Counted from the stretch's first letter, positions 1,004 to 41,200 are shown. The stretch is DNA of 45,110 bases from Macrostomum lignano (GCA_002269645.1 NIVC01004456.1:1-45110), one strand, 5' to 3'. Program-made: numbers and translations. Notes: generated by a model from the letters alone, not told the origin.

Positions 1004-1208
<205 letters not shown>

Positions 1209-1236
1209 GGACTCTCATCACTCCCGCATCCCGCAG

Positions 1237-2628: not shown

Positions 2629-3755
2629 ATGGCAGCGCACTTCGCCGCTCAAGTCAGCAACCAGCGTCTGCAGGTGAAGGAGACGGGCAGCAGGTGCCAA
2701 GTGCCCAATGACGATTACGCCAAGCTGATGTTCTACCTGGCCTGCGTCGAGGGGTTAAGTGCGGCGACTTCCCCGCCTACATGACGACTACTCCAAGTAC
2801 CGGCAGCTGACGGAGTCGCAGAAGCGGAACATCGTGGCCACGGCGAGGCGCCACGACCCGGATGAAGTGTGAGAATCTGCTGAGTTGTGGTTGATTGCTA
2901 CATGTATGCTGGGACATTGGACTCGATCCAAACGGCGGGAACAGCTGCGCTGGGGCCAAGTGACCAAGCCAAACAGCTCACTAACGCAATTCACAGGCTG
3001 CGCTGGGGCCAGTGACCAAGCCAAACAGCTCACTAACGTAATTCACAGGCTGTGCTGGGGCTGGGGCCAGTGACCAAGCCAAACAGCTCACTAACGTAAT
3101 TCACAGGCTGCGCTGGGGCCAAGTGACCAAGCCAAACAGCTCACTAACGCAATTCACAGGCTGTGCTGGGGCCAGTGACCAAGCCAAACAGCTCACTAAC
3201 GCAATTCACAGGCTGCGCTGGGGCCAGTGACCAAGCCAAACAGCTCACTAACGCAATTCACAGGCTGCGCTGGGGCCAAGTGACCAAGCCAAACAGCTCA
3301 CTAACGCAATTCACAGGCTGTGCTGGGGCCAGTGACCAAGCCAAACAGCTCACTAACGCAATTCACAGGCTGCGCTGGGCCAGTGACCAAGCCAAACAGC
3401 TCACTAACGCAATTCACAGGCTGTGCTGGGGCCAAGTGACCAAGCCAAACAGCTCACTACTAACGCAATTCACAGGCTGTGCTTCATAGAGGCGGACGAG
3501 CTGCCGGACAACCACGGCAACAAGTTCCTGCAGCTGTCGGCGCAGGAGGAGAACCTCACCGCTTTCGGCATCCGCGGAGCCGGCGGCGCTATGATGGGGC
3601 TGCGCCGGGAACTGGGAGACAGCCAGAATCTGATGAAGATCATGGCGCACACAAAGTCCTGGGCTAGCAACAACTATTACCAGCCGCTGCGGAGGCTGGG
3701 CGGCGCCTCATCGACTGACGCCAGCCAGGCCGCGCTGCTGCTGCTGATGAGGTGA
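2629..3755 (+). CDS. Two-exon protein of unknown function (about 173 aa) with two apparent 1-nt deletions; join(2629..2868,3476..3755)
   Basis: GC3-rich codons; donor GT|gtgaga at 2868/2869 and acceptor ttcacag|G at 3475/3476 have compatible phase. Adding 1 nt near 2751-2754 and 1 nt near 2779-2781 gives one frame MAAHFAAQVSNQ...VPNDDYAKLMFYLACVEGVKCGDFPAYxDDYSKY...DPDEVLCFIEADEL...KIMAHTKSWASNNYYQPL...LLMR* (522 nt = 174 codons). Confidence 0.6.
2944..3483 (+). repeat. 51-58 nt intronic minisatellite (10 copies), each with a branch point and 3' splice site
   Basis: Unit GCTG(C/T)GCTGGGGCC(A)AGTGACCAAGCCAAACAGCTCACTAACG(C/T)AATTCACAG; acceptor G at 2996, 3048, 3106, 3159, 3211, 3263, 3316, 3368, 3419, 3475. 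Confidence 0.95.
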
Positions 3756-4389
3756 ATGAGATGCTGTGCCATGCAGAAGCTGATTCCTCAGAGCAGGTGT
3801 ACAAAGCACAGAAATTTAAACTAATTCAAGACTTACTGTTAACTGATTAGTGAGCGTCATGCCCGGCACTCGGCTGTTTCTCCAAGCAAAAATTTCAACG
3901 CACACCAATTTCAGAGCTCTGAGAACGGACTGAGCTGGGCCACTCTCAACAAAGGCTGTACGGCACAGCGTCTTAAAAAACTGAGCGAAGATTTATGCGC
4001 AGTCTATGCTACTAACAGATTATGCTCGCTTACCAAAATCCGAACTGTAAAATTAACTGGCATTTTTCATTTCGTAAAGCCGAATCGATTATATCAATAA
4101 TAAATAATAATAAATGAAAAATCAGATTTGATTGAGTAATATTTTTTATGTTTGATACAACCGGAAGCTATTCACCATCGATAAAGTAGCTAAACAGTAG
4201 TATAGTGCGCCTTTTTATTCAATGATTTCTTTAAAATTCAAAAAACCTTTGTCTGTAACAAGGGTTTGCCTATTCGGATATAGCGTTTGCAATGGGTCAG
4301 TTTAACTCGGAATAGAGGTGACAATGAAGGTCAGTGGCCTCGACAAAACACGCCAAATTCCAAGCCGAGCTGCCAGCACGCCGCAGGGG

Positions 4390-7300
4390 TCAGACAGCGC
4401 CGATGAACAGCCGGCTGAGCTCCGGGTCGGAGGCGCGCACCGTCATGTTCATGGTGACGCCCTGGCCCGACGCTGCCAGGCGGCACCGCGCCAGCACGTC
4501 GTGGCCGCCGCGGAACACGCCGGCCAGGTGGAGGGTGTGGGTGGACTTGCCCGGGTCTGGCTTGTCCGAGCGGTCGCAGGCGGCCAGGCCGAGGACCTTC
4601 ACCAGGTTCTGCACCGCGTCAACAATGGAGGCCATGCTGGTGAGGGCGAAGGTGTCCTCCAGCTCCGAGTCGGGCGCCAGCTCCTCCCAGGCCGCCGAGA
4701 AGTTCGGCTTGATGACCGGCTGAACAAAATCGCACACGCCAATGTCCAGCTCCTCGAGCACGTACTCATCCGCGTAGCCCTCGTCTGAGTCGGGCTGCCC
4801 GGTAGCCGGGTCGCAGTCCTTCACCACGAAGCGCAGGGTGCACGACAGGCTGCAGGCGGACGGCTCGGTGGGCCGGAACACCGAGTAGCAGGTGGCCGGG
4901 GTGTTGTAGGGCAGCGCGGGTGCCGGGATCACCTGGTGCGATGGGATGCCAGTTTTGTAGGGTTCAACAGGGTTTCGAAAGGTTGCAGCCTGCATTGAGG
5001 GATCTGGGAGGGTTGCAGCCTAAATTATTAGGAGAAAAAGCACAAAGCCGCCTCACCTTGACCAGCTCCCAGTCCTCCGAGGGCACGCAGTCTACGTGGA
5101 CATCCTCAAGCCGCTGATCTGGCAGAGTGTTGAGCAGGTCGAACTGCAGCAGCAGGTAGTCGCTGAATGCGTGCTTGACACAGGTGACGGAGTACTCGGT
5201 CTCCTCCTCGGTGAGACGCACCGGCTCGGAGCTCTTGAACAGGCTTCCCAGCGCTGACAGCTCGGGCACGGCGGCCAGCTGCTTGGCGTAGCGATCCGCC
5301 TGCGTCTCCAGCGACTTGGCCGGCTGCTTGGCAGCGAAGGCCTCCGGCAGCTGCTCGTCCGGCTTTGGCCTGGCGGCCGGGGTGTGCACCGGCACGGAGC
5401 GTAGGTCGAATTTCTGCTGCAGAGAGTCGGCAGACTGTTGCGTGTACCTGGCGATGGGAGTGCGAGCGGGGACTGCTGCGGCACCGCGCTACTCATAGTA
5501 GGCAAAATGAGATCCGACTCGCGAAAAAGAAAATTAGAAATATAAAATAATATTCAAATATTCATCTTGGCTACGACTTTCGATCTCCTTGGATAGGCAC
5601 TCAAGCTTGACCAGATCAGCACCCGAGTCTGACCAGATCAGCACCCAAGCCTGACCAGATCAGCACCCAAGTCTGACCAGATCAGCACCCAAGCCTGACC
5701 AGATCAGCACCCAAGTCTGACCAGATCAGCACCCAAGTCTGACCAGATCAGCACCAGAGTCTGACCAGAGAAGCAGCCGAGTCTGACCAGAGCAGCACCC
5801 AAGTCTGACCAGAGCAGCACCCGAGTCTGACCAGAGTAGCACCCAAGTCTGACCAGAGCAGCACCCAAGTCTGACCAGAGCAGCACCCAAGTCTGACCAG
5901 AGCAGCACCCGAGTCTGACCAGAGTAGCACCCAAGTCTGACCAGAGCAGCACCCAAGTCTGACCAGAGCAGCACCCAAGTCTGACCAGAGCAGCACCCAA
6001 GTCTGACCAGAGCAGCACCCAAGTCTGACCAGAGCAGCACCCAAGTCTGACCAGAGCAGCACCCAAGTCTGACCAGAGCAGCACCCAAGTCTGACCAGAG
6101 CAGCACCCAAGTCTGACCAGAGCAGCACCCAAGTCTGACCAGAGCAGCACCCAAGTCTGACCAGAGCAGCACCCAAGTCTGACCAGATCAGCACCTGGTC
6201 CCAAACACTCACCTGAGCAGCACCTGGTCCCAAACACTCACCTGAGCAGGGCCTGCTCCAGGCCCACAACGGAGAGCTGCATGGGCTGCAGGACGAACTT
6301 GGAGGCCAGCTGCTCGTTGCGCAGCGACAGCACTCGGTGGTAGAAGGTGGCCCGGTCGCGGACCTCATCGTCGGTGTCCAGCTTGCAGCGGTCGAGCAGC
6401 ACCAGCACGGAATCCAGCAGCGGGGCGTGCAGGGCGCCGAACTTGGCGAGGGCGGCCACAGCCGCGGCGCGCACCAGCGGAACCTCCAGGATGACCCGGT
6501 TGTAGATGTACCTGCGGCGGAGGGCAGATGGGGGAAGAATGCAGCTGGGGCTTCAGTCTGGCTGAACTATTGCACAGATTGGCCTATACAGCTGGGTTAG
6601 CCCAGTTTGGCGCACCTGATGTACTTGGACGGCCGCATCGTCTTTGGGCCTTCGTCGCCGAGCAGGTGCAGCGTCTTGACGGCCAGCACGGGGTGCTCGC
6701 AGTCCTCGATGAACTCGCACAGGTGGGACAGGCCGGCCTCCTTGGACTCCGGGTTGTCCTCAATGACGGCCAGCAGGGCCTCCACGATGGACCGCTTGTA
6801 GTCGTAGCTGCCCTCCTCGCGCAGCATCTGGCTGAGGAAGGTCATCATGACGGCCTGCTTGCGCGGGTACTTGCTGCACAGGGCGCGCACGCTCTGCACC
6901 ACAACTATTTTGAACTCGTCCGAGATGTCCGTCATGAAGGTGGAGATCTGCTTCATCAGCCGGTCAACGGAAGCCTCGGAGCCTGTTTTCAGCAGGGTGG
7001 TGATGGCCAAGGTGGCGATTGACCTGGTGAGGGTAAACGGCAGGAGTAACTATAGTGTCTAAGTTCCTCGTCATCTAATTAGCAAAACCTTGACACCATA
7101 GCTTTTTGCGCCACACTCTACACTTTCTACTACCACTACCAGTAGACGAACTCAGACAATAACCAACCAACCTGTTTGAGTCGGCGATGAGCTGCTCCAG
7201 GTCCAGATTGCAGGCGGTCACAGCGGCCGGGTGCTTCATGGCCACCTGGTTGAGTGTTCGAACGGCAGCAAAGCGAAGCACCGCCTTGGGCGAGCTGAGG

Positions 7301-10300
7301 AACATCTGCAGCACGGAGACGGCCGGGGCCAGTTCCTTGGCCGAAGTCTGCTCCAGGGCCACAATAGCTCTGGCGGCCTCGTACACAACCAGCTCCGACT
7401 TGTTGCGCAGGCAGCTCTCCAGGAACTCGAAGGAGGCCGCGTCCTGGCCCGAGGAGCTCTCCTGCGGGATACCATTGAGGGGCGATTCTCAAGGGAATTG
7501 AGGAGGGAATTGAGGGGCGATTCTCAAGGGAATTAAGGGGCGATTCTCAAGGGAATTGAGGAGGGAATTGAGGGGCGATTCTCAAGGGAATTGAGGGTGG
7601 ATTCTCAAGGAAATTAAAGGGCGATTCCCAAGGGAATTGAGGGGCGATTCTCAAGGGAATTGAGGAGAGAATTGAGGGGCTATTCTCAAGGGAATTGAGG
7701 AGGGAATTGAGGGGCGATTCTCAAGGGAATTGAGGAGGGAATTGAGGGGCGATTCTCAAGGGAATTGAGGAGAGAATTGAGGGGCTATTCTCAAGGGAAT
7801 TGAGGAGGGAATTGAGGGGCGATTCTCAAGGGAATTGAGGAGGGAATTGAGGGGCGATTCTCAAGGAAATTGAGGAGAGAATTGAGGGGCGATTCTCAAG
7901 GGAATTGAGGAGGGAATTGAGGGGCGATTCTCAAGGAAATTGAGGAGGGAATTGAGGGGCGATTCTCAAGGGAATTGAGGAGGGAATTGAGGGGCGATTC
8001 TCAAGGGAATTGAGGAGAGAATTGAGGGGCTATTCTCAAGGGAATTGAGGAGGGAATTGAGGGGCGATTCTCAAGGAAATTGAGGAGGGAATTGAGGGGC
8101 GATTCTCAAGGGAATTGAGGAGGGAATTGAGGGGCGATTCTCAAGGGAATTGAGGAGGGAATTGAGGGGCGATTCTCAAGGAAATTGAGGAGAGAATTGA
8201 GGGGCGATTCTTAAGGGAATTGAGGGGCGATTCTCAAGGAAATTGAGGAGAGAATTGAGGGGCTATTCTCAAGGAAATTGAGGAGAGAATTGAGGGGCGA
8301 TTCTTAAGGGAATTGAGGGGCGATTCTCAAGGAAATTGAGGAGAGAATTGAGGGGCTATTCTCAAGGAAATTGAGGAGCGATTCTCAAGGGAATTGAGGA
8401 GGGAATTGAGGAGCGATTCTCAAGGGAATTGAGGAGGGAATTGAGGAGCGATTCTCAAGGGAATTGAGGAGAGAATTGAGGGGCTATTCTCAAGGAAATT
8501 GAGGAGCGATTCTCAAGGGAATTGAGGAGGGAATTGAGGAGCGATTCTCAAGGGAATTGAGGAGGGAATTGAGGAGCGATTCTCAAGGGAATTGAGGAGA
8601 GAATTGAGGGGCTATTCTCAAGGAAATTGAGGAGCGATTCCCAAGGGAATTGAGGAGGGAATTGAGGGGCGATTCTCAAGGGAATTGAGGGGGGAATTGA
8701 GGAGCGATTCTCAAGGAAATTGAGGAGCGATTCCCAAGGGAATTGAGGGGCGATTCTCAAGGGAATTGAGGGGGGATTCTCAAGGAAATTAAAGGGCGAT
8801 TCCCAAGGGAATTGAGGGGCGATTCTTAAGGGAATTGAGGGGCGATTCTCAGGAAAATTGAGGGGCGAATTGGAATTGAAGGGTGATTCCCAAAGAAATT
8901 GAGGGGCGACTCTCAAGGGAATTGAGGGGTGATTCTCAAGGGAATTGAGGAGGGAATTGAGGAGCGATTCTCAAGGGAATTGAGGAGAGAATTGAGGGGC
9001 TATTCTCAAGGAAATTGAGGAGCGATTCCCAAGGGAATTGAGGGGCGATTCTCAAGGGAATTGAGGGGGGATTCTCAAGGAAATTAAAGGGCGATTCCCA
9101 AGGGAATTGAGGGGCGATTCTTAAGGGAATTGAGGGGCGATTCTCAGGAAAATTGAGGGGCGAATTGGAATTGAAGGGTGATTCCCAAAGAAATTGAGGG
9201 GCGACTCTCAAGGGAATTGAGGGGTGATTCTCAAGGGAATTGAGGAGCGATTCTCAAGGGAATTGAGGAGAGAATTGAGGGGCTATTCTCAAGGAAATTG
9301 AGGAGCGATTCCCAAGGGAATTGAGGGGCGATTCTCAAGGGAATTGAGGGGGGATTCTCAAGGAAATTAAAGGGCGATTCCCAAGGGAATTGAGGGGCGA
9401 TTCTTAAGGGAATTGAGGGGCGATTCTCAGGAAAATTGAGGGGCGAATTGGAATTGAAGGGCGATTCCCAAAGAAATTGAGGGGCGACTCTCAAGGGAAT
9501 TGAGGGGTGATTCTCAAGGGAATTGAGAAGCAATTCCCAAGGGAATTGAGGGGCGATTCTCAAGGGAATTGAGGGGCCATTCCCAAGGATTCCTAAATAA
9601 TTCAACTCCAACCTGAATAAGCCGGCTGGCCACGCGGATGAGGTAGCAATAGGCCAGCGGAGACCGCAGCGAGCTCTTGCTGTACTTCTGCACCAGCTTG
9701 GTGACGGCCAGGCGGTCGGAGCGCCGGATCTGGTGCAGCAGCCCCAGGGCGTGGTACTGCACCATCACCGAGTCGGAGTTGACGGCCTCCTGGACCTCGT
9801 TGCTCCATCGGCGGACAACATCTTGGCTGGAGCGGAACATCTGGTAGGCGCTGACCAGGGCGGCGCTGCTCACTGGGGGTGAGCGGTCAACGATGGCCTG
9901 CTTCATGAAGCGCTCGATGCTCTGCAGCATCCCGGCGTCAGTGATGCGGCACAGCGCCCGGATCGACGGCGCGCGGAAGGCGTCCTCCTTGCCTGCGTTG
10001 AAGGGGCATCTGACTCAGTGAGCACTCCTTGTGATTGAATTCTTATCGGTTAATTCCCCTTTAGCATGGCATGAATTCCCCTGGAGCATGGCATGAATTC
10101 CCCTGGCGCATGGCATGAATTCCCATGGAGCATGGCATGAATTCCCCTGGAGCATGGCATGAATTCCCCTGGAGCATGGCATGAATTCCCCTAGAGCATG
10201 GCATGAATTCCCTTGGAGCATGGCATGAATTCCCTTGGCGCATGGCATGAATTCCCACGGAGCATGGCATGAATTCCCCTAGAGCATGGCATGAATTCCC

Positions 10301-13300
10301 TTGGAGCATGGCATGAATTCCCTTGGAGCATGGCATGAATTCCCTTGGAGCATGGCATGAATTCCCCTGGAGCATGGCATGAATTCCCCTGGAGCGTGGC
10401 ATGAATTCTCTTGGAGCATGGCATGAATTCCCCTGGACTATGACATGAATTTAACGCACCAGTCATGTCCTTGGTGAGACTGCTAGTGACAATAATGACA
10501 TCCTCGGCAACCGTGGCCATCTCCTTGATCACGATGTACACCAGGCGACGCAGGTGCACATCCTTGTTCTGGAACAGCTTGGTCATGGCAAAAAACGCCT
10601 CGGTGGCCTCCGTTCGGCCCAGCTGCTCACCCTGGCCAAGAATCACCAGCATCTTGGTGAGGATCTCAGTGCAACGCCGAACTTTCAGTGGTGTCTCGTT
10701 GAACACCCGGGCCTCCTGCAGCACGGTGCTCTTCTCCAGGCCGGTGTACAAGCTGGCTCGGCCTGGGGGATGTAAATACAGCCGTATAAATCAATATGGG
10801 AGCCTTAAACTGCACAGATCAATGAGATGAATGTAGAATTCTGCTTATTGCATGTCTTCTAGCTAAGCAGCAATAGTTAGTTTCATGTCCCAATCAAAGA
10901 TGAAAATAATTCACTCAAAGACATATTTTCTGCAAAAGTTAAAGATAAACTTCAGAAAAAAATACATAAGGGTCCATCAGCTTCTTTTACTTCTTCGCAG
11001 TAACAGTCGATGCTGTGACAATACATGTAGTATATTCACGTTCTTAAACAGCTTGAAGCATGGGTATTACTGTTATTGTTCAATAGACATTTATGCCCTA
11101 GCAAGGCACAACCACAGACACTCATTTGATGAAACCAAGCTTATCTGCCCGCAAATTTGAGAGCATTAAATGAAAGTTATGACTTAGACTTTCGTTCGAT
11201 TCATGCGGGCTTAAATGTTGGTCTATAATGTTAAAGGGATCAAGTGCCCACGGGGTAAAAAGGCCATGGCACAATACAGCATTTACAAACTGCCATACAC
11301 TGATTTTATTTACAGACCAAGCTAGGACAACTGAGTGATTCGGAGAGCAGTGCCAGTTTTTCCACTGCTGAAGAGGAACTGAATGAAGGACGCAGCTTAT
11401 GTCATGTGATAAAATTGGTGACTGACATTCCAAGGGTGCATTGAGCACCTCATTGTCAGAGTGCATGATAACTAATGTAAATGGCTTGCAGGAAATTGAC
11501 TGCTTTCAGGATCAAATTGATTGCAACAATAAGACACCTTAGCTATAGAACCCCAGAGACTCTCAGACTGCATGTCTTTTTAACATTCAAGACCAAATTG
11601 ACTGCTTTCGGGATTAGTTAGAAATGCTATATTATGAGTACTTATTGTACTAATAATTTGGTGCAAAATTGCTTATAACATCAATATCAAAAATGCTTTA
11701 CATAATATAGGAATGGTTATTTTACTAAGTTTAAATAGCTATATAACCTGCTATAAAGTAAAGTAGTTAGTATTTGTTGAATTTTCTTATTATTCAGCAA
11801 AACAAAGCTACAACTAGCTATTATGAGCCTATTGATTATATAATATTATATACATAATGTACATTTAGGCACAATGTTTCTTAAGTTATTATCTGCAATT
11901 CTTTACTTACTATTTTGTCTACCAAGTTTTTTCTACCAAGGTTCTTTACAATTGTGCAAGAGATAATAGCATAGTGCAATAACTAAAGTATTAAAATATT
12001 TATGTTTATTTTAATAAATTTAGTTTATATCAAAAATTGTATATATTAAATGCATGTGAAGTTTTTATATTCTAACTTTGAAAGGTCATTTGTATGCCAG
12101 AAATTCTTAGAAATTTATTATATTAGAAACTATTCAGAATGTGCAAAATAGTGCAAAACTGGATATCTACCAAAATTTTTAATGCAGAAAGCATAAGACA
12201 ATAACAGTTTTTTTATATAACAATACAATATAATATATATGCAGATAATGTAATTATCTTAAATTATGCAAATAGTAAAGACTCCTAGTTATCTTTTATT
12301 TTTGTACATTTAGCTATTTTCTTAGAAATTTATTGTTCAAATAGACATAGAATGGTGTATCTTAAATAGAAGATTTATCTATGTCTATGATGGTATAAAG
12401 TCTAACTATCAATTGGAAAGGTAGACTAAGTCAATGGTCAGTCAGTATAAAGCAGATGCACTGGAGGAAAAACTCAAGCAAGTTAATTACTGTTGTGCAA
12501 CAACAAACCATGGTTTGCCTGTCTTGTCACTGGTATCTATAAGACCACCCATTTATTAGTTTCACTAGTTGATAAATGGCAATCTATCTATTGAAACTTA
12601 TCAATTTTTCTATAAATCTATTATAAGTATTCATCATTAAACTAAATAGATACTACAAACCTTCAAAGAAAATAATTTAATACACAAAAGTAAAAGAGAT
12701 CTGGACTCCTTTTATATATTATCATTATATTCCAAGTGTACTCGTACCTAAGACCCTGGCCTTGTATATATTGGAATTGTGTACCAAGTGCATTAGGGAC
12801 CCTTTGTGTATGCCAGAATTTACTTTGGCAAAACCAAAGGTTACTTTCTTGACTATGGAAAGTTTATTTTTGTCTATGTATAAACTAGGATACAAATAAT
12901 ATTAAGATGATTTTAAAGTTTAGTATAAAATGCTTTTTATATTTAAAAAAGGTACAATCCTTAAAACATTTTTATCCAAGTTTTTCATATTTTGTCCAGA
13001 CAATAGCAAGTCAATTTGCCAAAAGTTAATTTGCTTAAAGCCAATTTGCCAAAAGCAAATGTTTTGCCAAAAGTTGTTTTGGTGAACAAATAAACAAAGA
13101 AAAATAAAAAATAAACAAATGAACAAATGAAACAGTAAATGTTAAATTTGAAACATTAAAATCAATCAATGACCTCATCTATGAACAAATAAATAACATA
13201 AAATGTTAAATATTAAATGTTAAAACCACTTGTCTTTTACAAATGCGGTAAAATGCTTGCATATTGTGGCTTACAAAGCAATAGCCTATTTTGAGAGGCA

Positions 13301-14150
13301 TAAAATTATGGAGTTTGCTGCATTATAAGCCAATCTTAATTCATTATTGATTTGTTGAGAAAAGAGTAAGTAATAATACTTTATATTCGTATATTACAAT
13401 TGTTTATTTGAAAAATATCTTTCTTGAGAAGAAAAAGTGTCTTTTGATAAATATTGGCTGAATACAACAATAGCTATATTGCATATATATGGGCAAATGT
13501 GGAAATTGTTTTGCAAAAGTTATTCTCCTTATATTTTTTATAAAAGTAGAAAACTTAAATAAACCAATAGGAAAATTTTTTCTATAGTTGATAATTATCA
13601 ATAAAAAATTATTGGCAATGACAAATAAAAAATCGAACTCACAACCTTACCTAGGCCTACATGACCCAAGTATCACACCATGATGCCAGAAAAGACTTCA
13701 AAAGATTGCCAAAGGCCTATTGCTATTTGAATTGGTGGATATCAGTTTCCTAATCAGGTTTTTGGCAAATTGACTTTCAGAAAAATGTATTCAGTGAATA
13801 AAATTTTGGCAAATAGTTTTTTGGCGAATCATCTAGTATTTGTAGCATTCTAGTATTCGGATCACTCACTTTATGGAAGCAATTTTGACTAGGCCTAGAG
13901 ATTCATTGTCATTAAGTTATTTTCTTATATTAAATAGAATCCATAAATGCATAATCTAAGACAAATGTCTTAATGATTAACTTAAATAACGATACACACA
14001 TATTTTACTAATATAAACACAAAGCTGCATTAAAGAAGTGCATGTGCATTACATTGCATTGCATACAAAAAATGTGATTGTTGTTTCAATTTCATTTGAA
14101 TGTTTCAGAAGCAACTCACCTTCTTCTTCATCTTTTTTATCACGACGCAT
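4390..14150 (-). CDS. COPG: Coatomer subunit gamma (COPI); complement(join(4390..4932,5057..5447,6242..6511,6616..7023,7172..7461,9613..9992,10460..10762,14120..14150)), 871 aa
   Basis: Recognisable gamma-COP motifs [111 protein letters not shown]. All 7 introns are GT-AG with compatible phases; total 2616 nt = 872 codons, the expected length for this family. Confidence 0.97.
5609..6248. repeat. 22-nt minisatellite (about 26 copies) plus a 29-nt duplication of the donor site in COPG intron 6
   Basis: Unit GTCTGACCAGAGCAGCACCCAA. On the minus strand CTGCTCAG|GTGAGTGTTTGGGACCAGGTG occurs twice (donor G at 6241 and 6212). Confidence 0.95.
7475..9582. repeat. About 2.1 kb purine-rich satellite filling COPG intron 3 (21-nt and 12-nt monomers, about 295-nt higher-order unit)
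   Basis: Monomers GGGAATTGAGGGGCGATTCTCAA-type and GGGAATTGAGGA. Blocks near 8937-9231 and 9232-9526 repeat almost identically (identical ORF text in the track). Confidence 0.96.
10064..10450. repeat. 22-nt minisatellite (about 17 copies) in COPG intron 2
   Basis: Unit GGAGCATGGCATGAATTCCCCT with point variants. Confidence 0.95.
13008..13776. mobile_element. Possible degenerate foldback/MITE-like element in COPG intron 1
   Basis: Perfect 17-bp inverted repeat AAGTCAATTTGCCAAAA (13008-13024) / TTTTGGCAAATTGACTT (13760-13776), with extra TTTGCCAAAA copies on the left and TTTTGGC(A/G)AAT copies on the right. No target-site duplication or transposase seen. Confidence 0.3.
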
Positions 14151-15690: not shown

Positions 15691-18600
15691 TCAATCATCC
15701 GACACGGAGCGCCTGACGGTGACGGACTCGGAGAAATGGCGCACCCGGTGAGAGGCGAAGTCGGATTCTCGGGCCGGTAGCGCTTCGAGCTGCAGCGGCT
15801 GCCGATGCCGGCACTGCCTGCCGCTGCTGCTGCGAGCTGCTTGACCGTCTCCTGCGGGAGAGATTCGAACTCGTGAGCAGAATTCTAAGTTTCAGTTTAC
15901 GCATGTGTCAGGAAATCCGTGAGTGTGTCATCTAGTCTGAGTATGTCAGGAAATCTGTGAGTGTGTCATCTAGTCTGAGTATGTCAGGAAGTCTGTGAGT
16001 ATGTCAGGAAATCTGTGAGTGTGTCATCTAGTCTGAGTATGTCAGGAATCTGTGAGTGTGTCACCTAGTCTACGAATGTGTCAGAAAATCTGTGAGTGTG
16101 TCAGGAAATTTGTGAGTGTGTTACCTAGTCTGCGAATATGTCAGGAAATTTGTGTGTGCCACCTAGTCTGTGAATGTGTCAGGAAATTTGTGTGTGCCAC
16201 CTAGTCTGTGAATATGTCAGGAAATTTGTGTGTGCCACCTAGTCTGTTAATGTGTCAGGAAATTTGTGTGCGCCACCTAGTCTGTTAATGTGTCAGGAAA
16301 TTTGTGTGTGCCACCTAGTCTGTGAATGTGTCAGGAAATTTGTGTGTGCCACCTAGTCTGCGAATGTGTCAGGAACAGTGCTGGATGAAATCAGGCCCAT
16401 AGAGAACTGACATTGATGCAACAAGAAATCGACAACCAATTTGGCGCAAAACACAAACTGGATACCGCGAGAAAAGGATTCGGGAACACTTTCTAAACTA
16501 GCCAATTTGGGTCAGTAAAACATGCAGAATGCACAGCAGGCCGGGCTTAAACGCAAGCGTAAACATGAAATTAAATAACATTAATAAGAATAGCTCGTAT
16601 AAATTTAATAACAGTTCAATTTAAATTTAAACTAATCATCCAGTACTCGTACTTGCAGGACTACTGTGCGATCCAAGCATTAAACTCGATTCCAAATTTA
16701 CTATGTTGTTGAAAATTTGCACTTTTACCTACGATTGAATACTATAATCTGCACTTTTATCTCCAATCTGCAATCAGACGCTAGAATTTGTACTTTTATC
16801 TCCAATCTGCAATTGGATACTATAATCTGCACTTTTATCTCCAATCTGCAATTTAGACGCTAGAATTTGCACTTTTATCTCCAATCTGCAATTAGACGCT
16901 AGAATTTGCACTTTTATCCCCAATCTGCAATTTAGACGCTAGAATTCGCACTTTTATCTCTAATCTGCAATTGGATACTATAATCTGCACTTTTATCCCC
17001 AATCTGCAATTTAGACGCTAGAATTTGCACTTTTATCTCCAATCTGCAATTTAGACGCTAGAATCTGCACTTTTATCTCCAATCTGCAATTTAGACGCTA
17101 GAATTCGCACTTTTATCTCTAATCTGCAATTGGATACTATAATCTGCACTTTTATCCCCAATCTGCAATTTAGACGCTAGAATTCGCACTTTTATCTCTA
17201 ATCTGCAATTGGATACTATAATCTGCACTTTTATCTCCAATCTGCAATTTAGACGCTAGAATTTGCACTTTTATCTCCAATCTGCAATTGAATACTATAA
17301 TCTGCACTTTTATCCCAAATCTGCAATTAGACGCTAGAATTTGCACTTTTATCCCCAATCTGCAATTTAGACGCTAGAATTTGCACTTTTATCTCCAATC
17401 TGCAATTAGACGCTAGAATTTGCACTTTTATCTCCAATCTGCAATTTAGACGCTAGAATTCGCACTTTTATCTCTAATCTGCAATTGGATACTATAATCT
17501 GCACTTTTATCCCAATCTCCAATTTAGACGCTAGAATTCGCACTTTTATCTCTAATCTGCAATTGGATACTATAATCTGCACTTTTATCTCCAACCTGCA
17601 ATTTAGACGCTAGAATTTGCACTTTTATCTCCAATCTGCAATTGAATACTATAATCTGCACTTTTATCCCAAATCTGCAATTAGACGCTAGAATTTGCAC
17701 TTTTATCTCCAATCTGCAATTAGACGCTAGAATTTGCACTTTTATCTCCAATCTGCAATTAGACGCTAGAATTTGCACTTTTATCTCCAATCTGCAATTA
17801 GACGCTAGAATTTGCACTTTTATCCCCAATCTGCAATTTAGACGCTAGAATTCGCACTTTTATCTCTAATCTGCAATTGGATACTATAATCTGCACTTTT
17901 ATCCCCAATCTGCAATTTAGACGCTAGAATTCGCACTTTTATCTCTAATCTGCAATTGGATACTATAATCTGCACTTTTATCTCCAATCTGCAATTTAGA
18001 CGCTAGAATTTGCACTTTTATCTCCAATCTGCAATTGAATACTATAATCTGCACTTTTATCCCAAATCTGCAATTAGACGCTAGAATTTGCACTTTTATC
18101 TCCAATCTGCAATTAGACGCTAGAATTTGCACTTTTATCTCCAATCTGCAATTAGACGCTAGAATTTGCACTTTTATCTCCAATCTGCAATTAGACGCTA
18201 GAATTTGCACTTTTACCCCCAATCTGCAATTTAGACGCTAGAATTCGCACTTTTATCTCTAATCTGCAATTGGATACTATAATCTGCACTTTTATCCCAA
18301 TCTGCAATTTAGACGCTAGAATTTGCACTTTTATCTCCAATCTGCAATTTAGACGCTAGAATCTGCACTTTTATCTCCAATCTGCAATTTAGACGCTAGA
18401 ATTCGCACTTTTATCTCTAATCTGCAATTGGATACTATAATCTGCACTTTTATCCCCAATCTGCAATTTAGACGCTAGAATTCGCACTTTTATCTCTAAT
18501 CTGCAATTGGATACTATAATCTGCACTTTTATCTCCAATCTGCAATTTAGACGCTAGAATTTGCACTTTTATCTCCAATCTGCAATTGAATACTATAATC

Positions 18601-21600
18601 TGCACTTTTATCCCAAATCTGCAATTAGACGCTAGAATTTGCACTTTTATCCCCAATCTGCAATTTAGACGCTAGAATTTGCACTTTTATCTCCAATCTG
18701 CAATTAGACGCTAGAATTTGCACTTTTATCTCCAATCTGCAATTTAGACGCTAGAATTCGCACTTTTATCTCTAATCTGCAATTGGATACTATAATCTGC
18801 ACTTTTATCCCCAATCTGCAATTTAGACGCTAGAATTCGCACTTTTATCTCTAATCTGCAATTGGATACTATAATCTGCACTTTTATCTCCAATCTGCAA
18901 TTTAGACGCTAGAATTTGCACTTTTATCTCCAATCTGCAATTGAATACTATAATCTGCACTTTTATCCCAAATCTGCAATTAGACGCTAGAATTTGCACT
19001 TTTATCTCCAATCTGCAATTAGACGCTAGAATTTGCACTTTTATCTCCAATCTGCAATTAGACGCTAGAATTTGCACTTTTATCTCCAATCTGCAATCAG
19101 ACGCTAGAATTTGCACTTTTATCCCCAATCTGCAATTAGACGCTAGAATTTGCACTTTTATCTCCAATCTGCAATTGGATACTAAAATTTTCCATTTTTT
19201 CTTATCTGTAATCGGACACTAGACTTTGCACACTTTTATTCTCAAAGCTACAGTTGCTTTCTTATACCCCAACTCCTGCCTAACTCAAAAAAATCTTAGA
19301 AAGACTAATTAAATCAGCTCTATCAGGCGAAAATCATTGATCCAAATCAAATATAATGAGGTTAGAAAAATAAAATCAGACACAAATGCCTCAGAGGCAT
19401 AAACATTACCTGTCGCCGTTTAGCCTGAAACGGGCGAGAACGATTTGCATCAATATTTTACAGCAGAAACACCTTGCTGACTACTGACTGCACTGAGCAA
19501 TGGAATTCGTTAAGACTCTATGCCAACACCACGGATACAGACAGGAACTGCAGCGAGGAAGCCGCGATAAAAGACAGGCAGATCTGATCAATCAGTGACA
19601 AGCAGTTGGGGTGGCAAAGTTACAGCTGACTCAATGGAGTTCTGCAAACCGCACCCCAGTCTTACATGTACATTACGGAGCGCGGTTTCCCTAACGGAGC
19701 AACGTTCAATCACAGCAAACTTCAAGAGCACAGTCAAGATAATCTACTGCTGCGTGGACTGAATTCTTTGAGCCTTGCTGAGCTCTTTCCATCAACAATA
19801 GACAGTTCGAGTCTTCAGAGATTGGGAAGAGACAGTCAGCATTGGTTGCAACTCCAGTTACAGTCTGAGGCAAGTCTGCAGGGATGGGGAAGAGACAGTC
19901 AGCATTGGCTGCAACTCCAGTTACAGTCTGAGGCAAGTCTGCAGGGATGGGGAAGAGACAGTCAGCATTGGCTGCAACTCCAGTTACAGTCTGAGGCAAG
20001 TCTGCAGGGATGGGGAAGAGACAGTCAGCATCAGCTGCAACTCCAGTTACAGTCTGAGGCAAGTCTGCAGGGATGGGGAAGAGACAGCCAGCATCAGCTG
20101 CAACTCCAGTTACAGTCTGAGGCACTCACTGGCGTCGGCGGAGGACGCCGCAGCCTTGAGGCCGCAGTGCAGGCCGATGCCCGACAGGCACAGGGCCATG
20201 CCGGCCCAGTTTACCGGGTTGATGACGTCATCGTTGATGCCGGCCGCCAGGACGATGGTGCAGACCTCCTTGAAGATGCCAGACACGGACAAGGTGAGGG
20301 AGCTGGTGCGGCTCAGCAGCAGGTACTCGGAGCATTCCAGGCCGAATGCGAGAAAGGCGCCAACCAGAAGGATCCGCACCGTGCCAAAGGCGGCCGTGGC
20401 GCTGGAGGCCCGGAACAGATTGGCCGTGGTGGCGATCTCCGTGCCCTCGAATGCCACGGACAGAGGCAGCAGCACCAGCACCATCCAGGGCTGCACATGG
20501 TAGATCATGTCCACCGGGTTCGCCAGCCCGAGCTCCGCCCGCTGCGTCACCACCTGGGCGGTGGTCCAGCGAATCCCCGACACGAACGAGGCGGACAGCA
20601 CAAGCAGGAAGCCGCCGGTGTGGAACTGCGTGCTCTTGTAGGTGAACAGGAACAGCCCCACCGCGATCAGCAGGATCACCAGCACAAGGCTCCAGCGCTG
20701 AGGGAGGGGCGACCGCATCTCAGGTGGCATTCCTGGCTCTCAGACTCTACCACTGATTCTACCTCTCTCTATTTCTGACTCTGATTGGCTGACTCTCTGC
20801 ACCTGACTGGCTGACTCTCTACACCTGACTGGCTGACGCTACATCTGACCGACTGACTCTGCATCTGACTGACTGACTCTCTACATCTGATTGGCTGACT
20901 CTGCATTTGACTGACTGACTCTGCATTTGACTGACTGACTCTTTACATCTGACTGGCTGACTCTGCATTTGACTGACTGACTCTGCATTTGACTGACTGA
21001 CTCTGCATTTGACTGACTGACTCTCTACACCTGACTGGCTGACTCTCTACACCTGACTGACTGACTGTTATGTTTTCTGCTTTTTGTAAGACAATAATTC
21101 CAGTCTCGATAGACTCTTCTAAATCAACGACATTAAAGTCGAAGTCCGTGATGTTTAATTGAAGCGAGTTACCAGCGTACTTTATATTTTTTCCTGCAGC
21201 CGCAACTTGTTCTTTCTTTCTATTTTAGTCGCGGCTCATTAAGGGCACTCAAGTCAAGCACATAAGACATGAGCACTGTAATGCATAACACAAATGAAAA
21301 ATAACGTGCGTCGTATACGCAATAGTTAAATTAGAGCATATACAACACTGACTCTCTACATCTGACTGGCTGACTCTGTATTTGACTGACTCTAACTCTG
21401 ACTCTCTACCCCTTGTCTCCAGACCTTTTTTGACTCTCCCCCACTGACTCTACCACTGATTATCCGAGGAGCTCCCTTTATCATAACACGTAACTCTCCC
21501 CAGCACTCTTTTCTCCTGACTCTCAGCACCTTCTTGACCCTCCTTGCTGACTCAGCTTCATGAAACCAATCGCTCAAAGGGCACCAGAAACACCCAGCCT

Positions 21601-30158: not shown

Positions 30159-30165
30159 CTGCACT

Positions 30166-35200: not shown

Positions 35201-35206
35201 GCAGAT

Positions 35207-38200
35207 TCATGCAAAGATTTGGACGCCCTCGGCCCCTTTAGCCTCAGCTGCATGGCTGGGTGCCGCGGAATCTTCCGCGTGCTGCAGCCGCTGCCTGCCT
35301 CGCCGCTTCAGCTCAGCGAGACGCTCTCGACGCTGACGCTCCGCCAAGGCTGGCTGCTTCGCCGGCTGCTGCTGTCGCTGCTGCTGTCTGGGTGGAGCTC
35401 TGGACGGCTTTCGCTTCTGCAGCGGCTCCCGTGGCTGCTGCGGTGCCGGAGGCGAAGGCGGCGCTGGCGGCACCCGCCGGAACTGGCAGTCGCGGATCTG
35501 CCTGCACGTGGCCAGCATCCGCCCGATGTCCTGCAGCTGCAGGCAGCAGATGGCCCAGAAGCCGTTCAGGTCGCAGTACTGGGTGACCCCGTTGGCCATG
35601 TTGTCCTCGCAGAGGCCGCGGAACTGCGCGAGCTTCTCGGTGAGCAGCAGGCGGGCCTTGCCGGCCGACACCCGGAGAATCCCCGACACTGCAGTGACAC
35701 AGGATCAGTGACTCACCTCCTCAGACAGGGAATCAGTGACTCACCTCCTCAGACAGGGCATCAGTGACTCACCTCCTCAGACAGGGAATCAGTGACTCAC
35801 CTCCTCAGACAGGGGATCAGTGACTCACCTCCTCAGACAGGGGATCAGTGACTCACCTCCTCAGACAGGGAATCAGTGACTCACCTCCTCAGACAGGGAA
35901 TCAGTGACTCACCTCCTCAGACAGGGAATCAGTGACTCACCTCCTCAGACAGGGAATCGGTGACTCACCTCCTCAGACAGGGAATCAGTGACTCACCTCC
36001 TCAGACAGGGAATCAGTGACTCACCTCCTCAGACAGGGAATTAGTGACTCACCCTCCTCAGACAGGCCCAGGGACTCACCCTCCTCAGACAGGCCCAGGG
36101 ACTCACCCTCCTCAGACAGGCCCAAGGACTCACCCTCCTCAGACAGGCCCAGGGACTCACCCTCCTCAGACAGGCCCAGGGACTCACCCTCCTCAGACAG
36201 GCCCAGGGACTCACCCTCCTCAGACAGGCCCAGGGACTCACCCTCCTCAGACAGGCCCAGGGACTCACCCTCCTCAGACAGGCCCAGGGACTCACCCTCC
36301 TCAGACAGGCCCAAGGACTCACCCTCCTCAGACAGGCCCAGGGACTCACCCTCCTCAGACAGGCCCAGGGACTCACCCTCCTCAGACAGGCCCAAGGACT
36401 CATCATCCAGGCAGGCCTCAATCCAGTCGGTGTCGGCGCGGATCCGCTGCTCCTCCCGCTCGGCCAGCAGCAGGAAGTAGCGCCCGGCGCTGGACGCTCC
36501 GCCATCGGCGGCGGTGTCGTCGGAGGCGGCCCCGGCGGCGGCCACTGACGATGAGGCCTCCAGGCAGAGGGAGCGGGTCATGCCGGCCGCCAGCACCTGG
36601 GCGCTGCGCAGGGCGGCGCTGATCATGATGAGCGAGGACCGCTCCGTCGGCGATGTGGCTGCCGCGGTCGCCCCAGTGGAGTCTCGGCTGGCCGCCGCGC
36701 CGGCCACCGACGCCTTTGCCGCCGCAGCAGCCTTTAATGAACGGACAGCCTCGGCACTGGCGTCAGAGCGGCTTCTGGCCTGAGAGACGGCAGTGGAGGT
36801 GGAGAAGAAGATTGCCTTCAGATTGCACACCATCAGGTTGCACACCATCAGGTTGCACACCATCAGGTTGCACATCATCAGGTTGCACACCATCAGGTTG
36901 CACACCATCAGGTTGCACATCATCAGGGTGCACATCATCAGGTTGCACACCATCAGGTTGCACACCATCAGGTTGCACACCATCAGGTTGCACACCATCA
37001 GGTTGCACATCATCAGGTTGCACACCATCAGGTTGCACATCATCAGGTTGCACACCATCAGGTTGCACATCATCAGGTTGCACACCATCAGGTTGCACAT
37101 CATCAGGTTGCACACCATCAGGTTGCACATCATCAGGGTGCACACCATCAGGTTGCACACCATCAGGTTGCACACCATCAGGAATTTTCTTCAATATAAT
37201 TATTTTTATGATACTTCGCTCCTATGTATCATACCATATCTGCATGGTAACTATTCGAGTTTGAGTAGCCCTAGCCCATAGCCGCTCGAATCCGCACACC
37301 AACCTTCCTAGCGGCCAGCGATCGCTTCTGGCCGTTGAGTTTCCTGGCGGCGTTGGCGCCGCCGCTCCTGAGCGCAACCGGGGCGCCGGCCTCTTCGGCG
37401 TCGGCAGTCGCGCTGGGGCTGGCGATGCCGTCGGAGTCTTCGGCGGGACCCGTTGGCTGGGCGGCAACTGGGGAGCTGGCGGCTGCTGCGGAGTTTGGGG
37501 CATGGGAAGGGTGCTCTGGATTGGCTGCGGCGGCATAAACTACTGTGAGTAGCCACCGAATTTCACACTGTAAAAAGCATTGAAAGTCGAATTATCCTCT
37601 TTACAGACAATGCGTACCAGATCTGATACACATACAAGGGTCCAAAATCTCACCCCATGAGATAGGGGATTCTAAACTCTCACCCTGTGAGATAGGGGAT
37701 TCTAAACTCTCACCCCGTAGGATAGGAGATTCTAAAATCTCTCTCCAGGAGATATGAGATTCTAAACTCTCACCCCACGAGATAGGAGATTCTAAACTCT
37801 CACCCCGTGAGATAGGAGATTCTAAACTCTCACCCCACGAGATAGGAGATTCTAAACTCTTACCCCACGAGATAGGAGATTCTAAACTCTCACCCCATGA
37901 GATAGGAGATTCTTAACTCTCACCCCACGAGATAGGAGATTCTAAACTCTCACCCCACGAGATAGGAGATTCTAAACTCTCACCCCGTGAGATAGGAGAT
38001 TCTAAACTCCCACCCCGCGAGATAGGAGATTCTAAACTCTCACCCCGTGAGATAGGAGATTCTAAACTCTCACCCCGTGGGATAGGAGATTCTAAACTCT
38101 CACCCCGTGAAATAGGAGATTCTAAACCCTCACCCCTCACATAGGATAGACCAGAATTCTCGAACTACGGAACCCCAAAACCCAGCTTCATTCTCCACCT

Positions 38201-41200
38201 GGCTCAGCCGCTGGGAGCAGCTCTGGCGCTGGCGCAGCTGCGGACGTCGAGACGGCGCTGGCGCTCGAGTTGGGCGCCGCGGCCGTGACAGAGGCGCCAG
38301 AAAAACCGGCCAGGCGTTTCGGCAAGCTGCTCTCGGCGAAGGTCACCACTTGAGAGCTCGGCGGTGGCGCACGAGTGCCAAGGCGGTTGCCGGCTTCGCC
38401 TCCAGCGCCGAGGTCGGGATGGTCAGGCCTGGCTGCTGGGATCTCTGCTGCAGCTGGAGGGTTGAAGATTGGCGGCAAAGACTCCGTGTGATGATGGGAC
38501 TTCCAGACTGAAATTTTCAAATTCACTGACAACAGCAGTACCAACACAGACTGAAATTTTCAAATTCACTGACAACAGCAGTAGCAACACAGACTGAAAT
38601 TTCAAATTCACTGACAACAGCAGTAGCAACACAGACTGAAATTTCAAATTCACTGACAACAGCAGTACCAACACAGACTGAAAATTTCAAATTCACTGAC
38701 AACAGCAGTACCAACACAGACTGAAATTTTCAAATTCACTGACAACAGCAGTAGCAACACAGACTGAAATTTCAAATTCACTGACAACAGCAGTACCAAC
38801 ACAGACTGAAAATTTCAAATTCACTGACAACAGCAGTACCAACACAGACTGAAATTTTCAAATTCACTGACAACAGCAGTACCAACACAGACTGAAATTT
38901 CAAATTCACTGACAACAGCAGTACCAACACAGACTGAAATTTTCAAATTCACTGACAACAGCAGTACCAACACAGACTGAAATTTTCAAATTCACTGACA
39001 ACAGCAGTAGCAACACAGACTGAAAAGTGCTCTGACACTGCCCGCCTACTCAATACAAATCTCAGGTCCCAGATGGAGCAAACAAGCAGGATTCCCTCAC
39101 CGGGCTGCTGCGCCTCCAGCAGCTGAGGCTCGCCAATGTCGAACCGCCGCCGGCGCTTCGTCCGCCGCGGCAGCCGATTGAGAAACTTGCGAATGGCGGC
39201 CAGCGGTGCGGCTGCCGACGAGCTCGGAGCCGCCGGGGCTTCTACCGGGGCTTCCGCCGCCGTTGCCGCCGGGGTCTCTTCGGCACCGTCGAAGTCGGCC
39301 TTAGCCGGCGGCTGCTGCGAGCCGGCGGCGGCGGAGCGGGTCTTCATGCGGGCCAGCCGGCCCAGCAGGGACCGCGGCTTCTTGGCGGCGGTGGCAGCGG
39401 CTGGCGGTGGGACGGCGGCCGCCGGCTCGGCGGGGCAGTTGGCAGGGTTGGGGCGGACACCGTCGGGACTGCCCCCGTCAAAGTCCTGCAGCTTCACTTT
39501 GAAGGCCTTGGGCGTGGCCAGGCTGTCGATGGTCCGCTTGGCCGTGCCGGTGGACAGGTCCGAGTGCAGCGACGTAGTCATGAGGGTGGAGGTTTCCATG
39601 GTAACGGGATGTGGCGGATTGAAAATCGCTTCGATGGACAGCGGCGGGTGCGGCGGCGAGCGAACCGACTCGTTGGACACCTATTTCAAGGTCGGTGTAG
39701 AAAAGTAAAAATACACTAACCAATTCAATATTTTGGTCTACTATTAGTAGTTTACGATTTCTGACAGCAAAATCTAGCGCATCGATTAGCAATAATAGCA
39801 GCGCTAGACCTGCAGCGTACGCGCAGATTAACCTAGAATAGGGAGCAACTGTTCCACTGCAATCAGGCCGCACCTGACACACCTGAAACTTGGCGTGCCG
39901 AGGAGTGTCAGGTGTCTCAGCAGCAGCGTGCGAGGCCAAGGCGGGCGGCGCACAATCGATTAGGGGAGCGCGTGGGGGAGCCTTCTTGGAAAGGGGATTT
40001 TTCACCCACTTTCTCTTTCCCAACTGATCACGGCAAGACACAGAAGCGGAAATCAACACACCTTAAATTGACCCCTGAGTCGCCCACTAAGCAGAACCGC
40101 GAGGGAACAGAATTCGCCTTTCTAAGTTGAAGTAATACAGCGTTTGGAGTAGTTCAAGCCCTATTTTACGAGCAGCGAATGATAGGAGCGATGCTTGAGA
40201 ATGGTTCAGGGTGACTCTTGAGAAAGGTTTAGGGGTGAATCTTGAGAAAGGTTCAGGGGTGACTCTTGAGAATGGTTCAGGGGTGACTCTTGAGAATGGT
40301 TCAGGGGTGACTCTTGAGAATGGTTCAGGGGTGACTCTTGAGAATGGTTTAGGGGTGACTCTTGAGAATGGGCGATGCTTGAGAATGGTTTAGGGGTGAC
40401 TCTTGAGAATGGTTCAGGGGTGACTCTTGAGAATGGTTCAGGGGTGACTCTTGAGAATGGTTCAGGGGTGACTCTTGAGAATGGTTCAGGGGCGACTCTT
40501 GAGAATGGTTTAGGGGTGACTCTTGAGAATGGTTCAGGGGCGACTCTTGAGAATGGTTCAGGGGTGACTCTTGAGAATGGTTTAGGGGTGACTCTTGAGA
40601 ATGGTTCAGGGGTGACTCTTGAGAATGGTTCAGGGGTGACTCTTGAGAATGGTTTAGGGGCGACTCTTGAGAATGGTTTAGGGGTGACTCTTGAGAATGG
40701 TTCAGGGGTGACTCTTGAGAATGGTTTAGGGGTGACTCTTGAGAATGGTTTAGGGGTGACTCTTGAGAATGGGCGATGCTTGAGAATGGTTCAGTGGTGA
40801 CTCTTGAGAATGGTTTAGGGGTGACTCTTGAGAATGGTTCAGGGGTGACTCTTGAGAATGGTTCAGGGGTGACTCTTGAGAATGTTTCAGGGTGACTCTT
40901 GAGAATGGGCGATGCTTGAGAATGGTTTAGGGGTGACTCTTGAGAATGGGCGATGCTTGAGAATGGTTTAGGGGTGACTCTTGAGAATGGGCGATGCTTG
41001 AGAATGGTTTAGGGGTGACTCTTGAGAATGGTTTAGGGGTGACTCTTGAGAATGGTTCAGGGGTGACTCTTGAGAATGGTTCAGGGGTGACTCTTGAGAA
41101 TGGTTCAGGGGTGACTCTTGAGAATGGTTTAGGGGTGACTCTTGAGAATGGTTCAGGGGTGACTCTTGAGAATGGTTCAGGGGTGACTCTTGAGAATGGT

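Follow-up and report, generated by a model that had tools for sequence, protein, structure and literature searches.

In amphioxus, minisatellites called mirages duplicate the exon–intron boundaries of Adh3 and of the globin genes BflGb6 and BflGb9 (PMC3087553). In the human F7 gene, the first unit of a 37-bp repeat in intron 7 spans the exon 7–intron 7 boundary, and 5′-to-3′ donor selection has been shown experimentally, the identical pseudo-donors being silent (PMC1557585). Here we describe arrays of the same kind in a 45,110-nt stretch of Macrostomum lignano DNA (hereafter the window), which is the whole scaffold NIVC01004456.1 of assembly GCA_002269645.1 (Mlig_3_7). A first-pass annotation of this stretch had named five intronic arrays, here (a) to (e), as copies of the adjacent splice sites, had proposed that exon–intron boundaries are hotspots for tandem amplification, and had not recognized such a density of junction arrays as described before. 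The phenomenon is not new, as junction-spanning minisatellites are known from both systems above. We propose, with a probability of about 0.75, that the M. lignano genome is unusually rich in young minisatellites, every one of them confined to a single locus, and that splice junctions are not special targets but are struck at the rate that geometry predicts.

To place the arrays within genes, we used spliced alignments of annotated M. lignano proteins, requiring GT–AG borders and exact translation across junctions; the models used were P0001 (COPG), P0126 (SLC35C2-like), and P0122, P0123, and P0125 (GKAP-like). GenBank protein models of M. lignano are RNA-seq guided (PMC5730564). Four comparison loci's worth of sequence was drawn from Mlig_3_7, comprising a syntenic copy, scaffold ends, and unrelated paralog loci. 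The syntenic copy, L001 (NIVC01003279.1), is diverged, with 96–98% identity to window 1–24239. Two scaffold ends represent the same allele as the window: L002, the end of NIVC01000716.1, matches 1–15200 with ~99.5% identity, and L005, the start of NIVC01003740.1, matches 30671–45110 with 99.5% identity. Array structure and copy numbers in both were identical to those in the window, G-run lengths excepted. Two unrelated loci, L004 and L006, hold paralogs of the genes termed GKAP-like and SLC35C2-like here. We also looked for a diverged counterpart of the GKAP-like region and found none; L005 was the same allele and L004 an old paralog. All copy numbers given below are provisional because of homopolymer errors and redundant scaffolds in the assembly.

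Tandem Repeats Finder (TRF) detected 21 tandem arrays covering 36.6% of the window, namely 19 minisatellites with units of 12–63 nt and two microsatellites. Array coverage was 29% in L001 and 36.6% at the unrelated locus L004, and 15% of the M. lignano genome has been reported to consist of simple and tandem repeats (PMC5730564). The arrays were present where the first-pass annotation had placed them, and all of its motif counts and coordinates were exact in TRF and motif checks. Its view that each array has its own unit was also borne out: when the consensus sequences of 29 units (from the window, L001, and L004) were compared pairwise, giving 406 pairs, no family relationships beyond chance emerged. 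One trivial pair, in which both units came from a single array, was set aside, and the highest non-trivial pair (z = 5.7, score 13 over 22 nt) was the sole such pair among the 406. Among the loci compared, none of the 29 units recurred at an unrelated locus, as those of a dispersed satellite or transposon should. A consistent sense-strand composition skew of the arrays was likewise looked for and not found.

Three arrays contain an authentic splice junction as their terminal copy, with exon bases in the unit. The first lies in gene A, a small unnamed plus-strand gene with no family match, whose product has 186/194 aa in sister scaffolds. Its intron 1 (2869..3475, plus strand) is 607 nt long, or ~119 nt with the array collapsed, and the reading frame is kept only by joining the donor GAAGT/gtgaga to the acceptor ttcacag/GCTGTGCT; this junction was thus set by frame logic alone. 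Array (a) (2944..3483, plus strand) is a mirage-type acceptor array of a 52-nt unit repeated 10.2 times, and three units together form a higher-order period of 157 nt. In this unit, 8 exon nt (GCTGYGCT) follow 44 intron nt that contain the AG and a branch-like CTAAC; CTCACTAAC, the AG, and the 8 exon nt are found in each of the ten units. There are 10 TTCACAG acceptors, with AG ends from 2996 to 3475, and all nine upstream of the authentic one, if used, were computed to give a premature stop. The array has 10 units in the window versus 18 in L001, where 17 units are decoys; 14 of these share one sequence, from which the exon-attached unit departs at two positions. This is the pattern of concerted evolution that spares boundary units, as reported for the amphioxus mirages (PMC3087553).

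In addition, a 3-nt insertion in the authentic acceptor unit of gene A (window 3420–3475) creates a perfect TACTAAC branch consensus. We considered this insertion as a conserved mark of the authentic acceptor and rejected the idea, as L001 lacks it. Compared with L001 and L002, exon 1 of gene A (window 2630–2868) has lost a single base at three places within G/C runs, which breaks the frame. A pseudogene was considered here and also rejected, the frame breaks being assembly indel noise in G/C runs.

The second junction array lies in a COPG-like gene on the minus strand, whose open reading frames (ORFs) match M. lignano coatomer gamma P0001 (BOX15_Mlig030230g1) at 98.5–100% per exon and at 92% over a rough composite. 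COPG intron 5 (5448..6241; 794 nt) was defined by a P0001 spliced alignment with 0 mismatches. Array (b) (6182..6249, minus strand) comprises a 29-nt unit repeated 2.3 times, each unit being made of 8 exon nt (CTGCTCAG) and 21 intron nt, and it presents two identical donors, the authentic one at 6241 and a decoy at 6212. From the sequence, use of the decoy would read into AGG TGA, a stop. In L001, COPG intron 5 exists without this duplication; the donor region is single-copy, CTGCTCAG/GTGAGTGTTTGGGACCAGGTG CTGATCTGG, and the 29-nt segment that the window holds twice is flanked there by CTGcTCaGG and CTGaTCtGG. Since the duplication is missing from the diverged copy, array (b) is recent. The same intron also holds a 22-nt array (5597..6195, minus strand) that spans no junction and has 27 copies in the window versus 16 in L001.

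The third junction array lies in a minus-strand gene with a Pfam GKAP domain match (E = 1.6e-11). Intron e of this GKAP-like gene (35689..36376, minus strand; 688 nt) is nearly all array and has a phase-1 junction, GAGGAGG/gtgagt ... cactgcag/TGTCGGGG. Array (d) (35699–36390 by TRF, or to 36403 with the matching exon end; minus strand) consists of 25 copies of a 27/28-nt unit made of the exon end plus GTGAG. TRF extends it 14 nt into the exon, and 25 of the last 27 exon nt (36403..36377, ATGAGTCCTTGGGCCTGTCTGAGGAGG) agree with the unit, so that the array carries 14–27 exon nt, compared with 8 in gene A and 8 in COPG. The 25 GTGAGT donors run from 36376 to 35716; the 13 exon-proximal donors are spaced at 27 nt and the 12 distal ones at 28 nt. 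When each donor was used in turn in a computed splice, donors 1–13 gave in-frame products with 0–12 extra copies of GESLGLSEE and donors 14–25 gave premature stops. The proximal/distal split may be chance or may reflect selection against frame-shifting decoys near the exon.

Conversely, gene models did not support the other two named arrays as copies of a junction. The product of the SLC35C2-like gene (TPT family) is P0126 (BOX15_Mlig005048g4), with an annotated coding sequence at 22065..19420 on the minus strand. Its C terminus, ...ADAS, needs the donor GCCA/gtgagt followed by an acceptor and then GC TAA. The nearest acceptor that fits is 19425, in agreement with the annotated end at 19420; the last intron (20129..19425) therefore splits the final Ser codon, and the last coding exon (19420–19424) is only GC plus TAA. 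Array (c) (19810..20124, minus strand; 63-nt unit, 5.0 copies) begins 5 nt past the real donor. Its five strong YCTGMAG motifs (ctcttccccatccctgcag; AG ends from 20065 to 19813) are not homologous to the annotated acceptor, which lies 385 nt beyond the array; array (c) is a set of acceptor look-alikes and not of junction copies. The 63-nt unit is also an open frame of 21 codons (window 19706–20125).

Array (e) (38504..39026, minus strand; 43-nt unit, 12.2 copies) lies in GKAP-like intron b (39100..38454) and shows 13 weak TTTCAG motifs (AG ends from 39020 to 38508). It ends 50 nt short of the annotated acceptor at 38454, where both P0122 and P0123 join ...EAQQP/AAAEIP; two further models use other sites, and the AG beside the array, at 38508, is the acceptor in none of the four GKAP-like models. 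Array (e), too, is made of acceptor look-alikes rather than the annotated junction, although the AG at 38508 may serve as an in-frame alternative acceptor adding 54 nt. Together, these results show that the copying of an adjacent splice site with a few exon bases, as claimed for five arrays, stands for (a), (b), and (d) and falls for (c) and (e).

We then asked how often arrays would be expected to include a junction. Of the 15 introns mapped in the window, 11 held arrays. Three of the four array-free introns measure 104, 124, and 148 nt, and the fourth is a 5′ intron that is AT-rich and 3357 nt long; most array-bearing introns collapse to 89–250 nt (453–674 nt for three) when each array is cut to one unit (collapsed length L0). 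For a unit-long seed (u) placed uniformly, excluding positions wholly within the exon, the probability of spanning a junction is 2(u−1)/(L0+u−1). Among the 12 intronic minisatellites this predicts 3.4–3.9 junction-spanning arrays, and 3 were observed (P(≥3) = 0.72–0.85); with (c) and (e) counted as well, P(≥5) = 0.22–0.33. L001, L004, and L006 supplied another nine intronic arrays with no spanning case among them, giving 3 of 21 observed versus 4.8 expected for the window and the other loci combined. Proximity gave a similar picture: it is true, as the first-pass annotation stated, that most arrays lie near splice sites, with 9 of the 12 intronic arrays ending within 50 nt of a junction, but this is no excess (7.7 expected, P = 0.25). 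At the scale of this window, hotspots at the boundaries are thus not supported; because the short progenitor introns already predict the number of spanning arrays seen, no preference for junctions needs to be invoked.

Several points weigh against our interpretation. One is a cruder null taken over all collapsed non-coding DNA, under which 3 spanning arrays were observed versus 0.8 expected (P = 0.04). We attribute this excess to the denser packing of arrays in introns: 12 of the 19 minisatellites fall within the 31% of collapsed non-coding sequence that is intronic (P = 0.004), the other seven lying outside annotated genes, and arrays make up 59–76% of intronic bases versus 38% of intergenic bases. 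The intron concentration is an observation separate from junction hotspots, but our reading does not itself account for it. In the geometric null, moreover, seeds are taken to fall uniformly and progenitor lengths are estimates from collapsed arrays; the length for GKAP-like intron e is not reconstructable and was bracketed at 28–100 nt. The whole sample is one 45-kb window and three other loci. Which junction copy is used rests on GenBank/UniProt protein models, several of which carry assembly-error frameshifts, and slippage or microhomology is proposed as the mechanism on the strength of two polymorphic cases and the anatomy of the arrays.

The two polymorphic cases are array births that distinguish the window from L001: the 29-nt donor duplication and an array in COPG intron 6, where L001 has a 30-nt unit repeated 15.5 times (L001 17817–18280) and the window has none. 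At window 4981–5019, this intron holds one 30-nt unit (~1.3 copies) followed by an 11-nt repeat of the unit start; this difference could alternatively represent a contraction to near one unit. In the GKAP-like gene, TGAGTC occurs twice, 27 nt apart, at the exon end and at the intron start. Both births and the TGAGTC repeat would fit tandem duplication between short direct repeats. An array may thus start with the tandem duplication of a local non-coding segment of 12–65 nt, with slippage or unequal exchange at short direct repeats as the probable cause. It would then grow, shrink, and homogenize, often in multi-unit blocks; the higher-order periods of 2, 3, and 5 units that TRF found in the arrays point to block-wise exchange. 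Within genes, arrays survive only in introns, selection removing any expansion into coding sequence. Since the unexpanded introns are short, the duplicated segment fairly often includes a splice junction, producing a mirage-type array that carries exact copies of the donor, or of the branch site and acceptor, plus a few exon bases.

Other copy-number differences between the window and L001 were found in the COPG gene, beyond those in array (a) (10 versus 18), array (b) (2 versus 1), and the 22-nt array of intron 5. Intron 1 (10459..9993, minus strand) contains a 22-nt array (10052..10451) that begins at intron position +9 and has 18 copies in the window versus 43 in L001. Intron 2 (9612..7462, minus strand; 2151 nt, or ~89 nt collapsed) is filled by a 23/35-nt array family (7504..9588), whose ~2085 nt compare with ~520 nt in L001. 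The age of the introns themselves could be judged in two cases. In the GKAP-like paralog of L004, an intron matches intron e in codon position and phase (GAAGAGG/gtcagt ... tttcag/TCGCC) but holds a 21-nt array unrelated to array (d). Since this intron and COPG intron 5 of L001 both exist without the arrays seen in the window, the introns are older than their arrays.

These observations bear on the rival explanations. Preferential seeding on splice junctions, with boundaries as mutational hotspots, could draw on the three arrays that include a real junction, the nine that end near one, and the excess under the cruder null; we nevertheless consider it unlikely, given the prediction from short progenitor introns, the unremarkable proximity count, the absence of spanning among the nine intronic arrays at three other loci, the look-alike status of two of the five named arrays, and the seven arrays outside annotated genes, one of which abuts a stop codon instead of a splice site. 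A Rogers-type model, in which the junction arrays would be traces of introns gained when an exon segment with AGGT was duplicated in tandem, is highly improbable. GKAP-like intron e, nearly all array and built of exon-end copies, looks like such a case, but the L004 paralog has an intron with unrelated content at the same position, and neither this intron nor COPG intron 5 is missing from the relative without the duplication. There is just as little to commend a dispersed satellite family or the internal repeats of intron-inserted transposable elements. A long interspersed nuclear element (LINE) fragment does lie in the window, and long terminal repeat elements make up 21% of the genome (PMC5730564); against this, the 29 units share no similarity beyond chance, junction-bearing units consist of host exon and intron sequence, and L001 preserves a single-copy progenitor. 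These same facts, with the host exon end present in three arrays, uphold the first-pass view that the arrays were born locally and are not one dispersed satellite.

Could the arrays or their junction copies be artefacts of long-read assembly or polishing? The scaffold does show 1-bp homopolymer deletions in an exon, and the redundant ends L002 and L005, coming from the same assembly, are no independent evidence. Yet the arrays recur at matching positions in L001, which differs in copy numbers and has unit variants of its own, the architecture is repeated at unrelated loci, the genome paper reports abundant tandem and simple repeats (PMC5730564), and 25 phased 27/28-nt units are not what indel noise creates; we regard an artefact as scarcely credible. 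A different question is whether the spliceosome uses the junction copies. The first-pass annotation had suggested decoy splice sites and copy-number-dependent isoforms. Exact decoys are indeed present in three genes (gene A, COPG, and GKAP-like), (c) and (e) having only look-alikes. P0001, P0123, and P0125 join the exon-attached copy at arrays (b) and (d). Because the annotated products match, we infer that the exon-attached copy, that is, the 5′-most donor or 3′-most acceptor, is generally used; most decoys would lead to premature stops, presumably cleared by nonsense-mediated decay, and GKAP-like donors 1–13 would give harmless in-frame 9-aa insertions.

Splicing of the copies into isoforms, such as GKAP-like products with 0–12 GESLGLSEE repeats or SLC35C2-like products with the C-terminal tails of 35–119 aa that the array (c) look-alikes would encode, has several points in its favor: the exact 27-nt spacing of the 13 exon-proximal donors with all products open and in frame, the 63-nt unit of (c) being open in the frame set by its look-alike acceptors, and, by our reading of the sequence, the in-frame AG adjoining (e). 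However, repeat insertions occur in no annotated protein, every decoy in gene A and COPG leads to a premature stop, the F7 pseudo-donors are silent (PMC1557585) and amphioxus mirages leave splicing undisturbed (PMC3087553), and divisibility of a unit by 3 has a one-in-three prior. Such isoforms are therefore improbable, and copy-number dependence would be possible only for the GKAP-like donor array. Our reading remains that of private, locally born arrays that strike junctions by geometry.

The other COPG introns are at 14119..10763, 7171..7024, 6615..6512, and 5056..4933 (minus strand). The SLC35C2-like gene has a further intron at 21612..20698 (intron 1, minus strand), which carries a 20-nt array of 13 copies (20775..21066). 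In the GKAP-like gene, intron a (43135..39681, minus strand) holds a 24-nt array of 120 copies (40194..42998), intron c (38198..37486) a 30-nt array of 16 copies (37644..38136), and intron d (37303..36780) a 15-nt array of 24 copies (36818..37182). The window introns thus form two classes, one of 104–148 nt without arrays and one of 0.5–3.5 kb, 32–99% of which is a private array. L004 and L006 showed the same tendency toward two intron classes and intron-dense arrays.

Outside annotated genes, two intergenic arrays at 15904..19190 separate the 3′ end of the SLC35C2-like gene from the 5′ exon of COPG: TRF placed a 38-nt array of 7.5 copies at 15904–16375 and a 39-nt array of 62 copies at 16742–19190, and both are also present in L001. 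TRF further located arrays with units of 12 nt (27603–28206), 50 nt (30165–31771), 40 nt (32461–33187), and 14 nt (33531–33846). The final base of the GKAP-like stop codon is the first of a 21-nt array of 35 copies (34475–35207), and a degenerate partial unit (AATCTTTGC) lies within the last GKAP-like codons; here an array edge is pinned to a coding boundary other than a splice site. The microsatellite (CAGA)52 (window 1004–1212) ends 24 nt 5′ of a probable acceptor (ctcccgcatcccgcag/GTGCTGG, ~1236) of the last coding block of a seven-transmembrane (7TM) receptor gene (ORF to 1704; a 7tm_1 gene in L001 and L002), so that 52 CAG motifs precede this site. A LINE RNase H fragment (25619–26355) and a leucine-rich-repeat ORF (27136–28206) are both unannotated, and the latter runs directly into the 12-nt array, which is open on both strands. 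Several arrays besides (c) form long ORFs and are likely gene-predictor traps; in L004, a 339-aa predicted "gene" (14916–15935) lies almost entirely within a 20-nt array.

The annotation itself called for care. For L001, GT–AG enumeration to the annotated product length was far too permissive. It did reveal that the SLC35C2-like model there stops early, in a shifted frame, and that the gene A range has no starting ATG, so the gene ranges of L001 were not used as an exon guide. Among the protein matches, a search for M. lignano transcripts found only transcripts of other species (P0002 and P0003) and genomic annotation. The window is also a possible bridge joining scaffolds NIVC01000716.1 and NIVC01003740.1.

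Arrays (a), (b), and (d) are mirage-type minisatellites in a new phylum, the type itself having already been described. Mirages are made of head-to-tail units of ~10–160 nt, and the present arrays (52 nt × 10.2, 29 nt × 2.3, and 27/28 nt × 25) fall within this range. Like the amphioxus mirages, they have boundary-spanning units of tens of nucleotides with AG/GT signals, affect both 5′ and 3′ boundaries, differ in copy number between haplotypes, and have boundary units that escape homogenization (PMC3087553). They differ in that they belong to the Platyhelminthes and reach higher junction copy numbers (10, 18, and 25), and in that most mapped introns have a private array, the junction cases being a by-product of intron inflation. 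Regular splicing is reported to be undisturbed in amphioxus (PMC3087553), whereas in M. lignano site choice is read from annotation. The COPG and GKAP-like donor arrays resemble F7 in that an authentic donor is followed by identical tandem pseudo-donors and the most upstream one is used, experimentally in F7 (PMC1557585) and by annotation in M. lignano. F7, however, is a single experimentally dissected locus, whereas site choice in M. lignano comes from annotation; M. lignano also has acceptor-side arrays and one donor array with 13 in-frame copies.

Intron gain by tandem genomic duplication shares with these arrays a duplication that crosses or creates splice signals and leaves the mRNA unchanged (PMC3265369, PMC4974935), but in M. 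lignano existing introns were lengthened and none was created. The local density of junction arrays follows from the genome's array load together with its short introns. A related idea exists for human genes: judging by its title, a study by Zhuo et al. (PNAS, 2007; cited in PMC3488318) reportedly concerns alternatively spliced introns derived from tandem arrays. In both cases, arrays would bring repeated splice signals into genes. There, introns would arise within arrays; in M. lignano, the introns predate them. Our literature search found no link between Macrostomum minisatellites and introns or splice sites.

What the arrays mean for M. lignano concerns intron size, assembly, and splicing. 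Mean intron length is 1,114 nt in this species versus 558 and 692 nt in two relatives, and the comparative Macrostomum paper does not settle what the repeats are (PMC10468722); private intronic minisatellites may contribute to this longer mean. The arrays also partly explain why the genome is difficult to assemble and annotate, with ORF-forming arrays and look-alikes such as (c) misleading gene predictors, and they carry a caution: arrays at splice sites need not mean targeting when the underlying introns are only ~100 nt. It is conceivable, though we hold it doubtful, that minisatellite birth and expansion in M. lignano concentrate in transcribed introns rather than occurring evenly over non-coding DNA. 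If so, introns would be bimodal (~100–150 nt, or 0.5–3.5 kb with 60–98% being one private array), the long mean intron of the species would be accounted for, and there would be, across the genome, many naturally occurring series of 2–25 identical splice sites, some of them in-frame ladders like the 13 GKAP-like donors. Arrays of identical donors, or of branch sites with acceptors, are natural experiments on how the spliceosome chooses among equal sites. Since M. lignano can be made transgenic (PMC5730564), both the number and the placement of junction copies could be altered in vivo.

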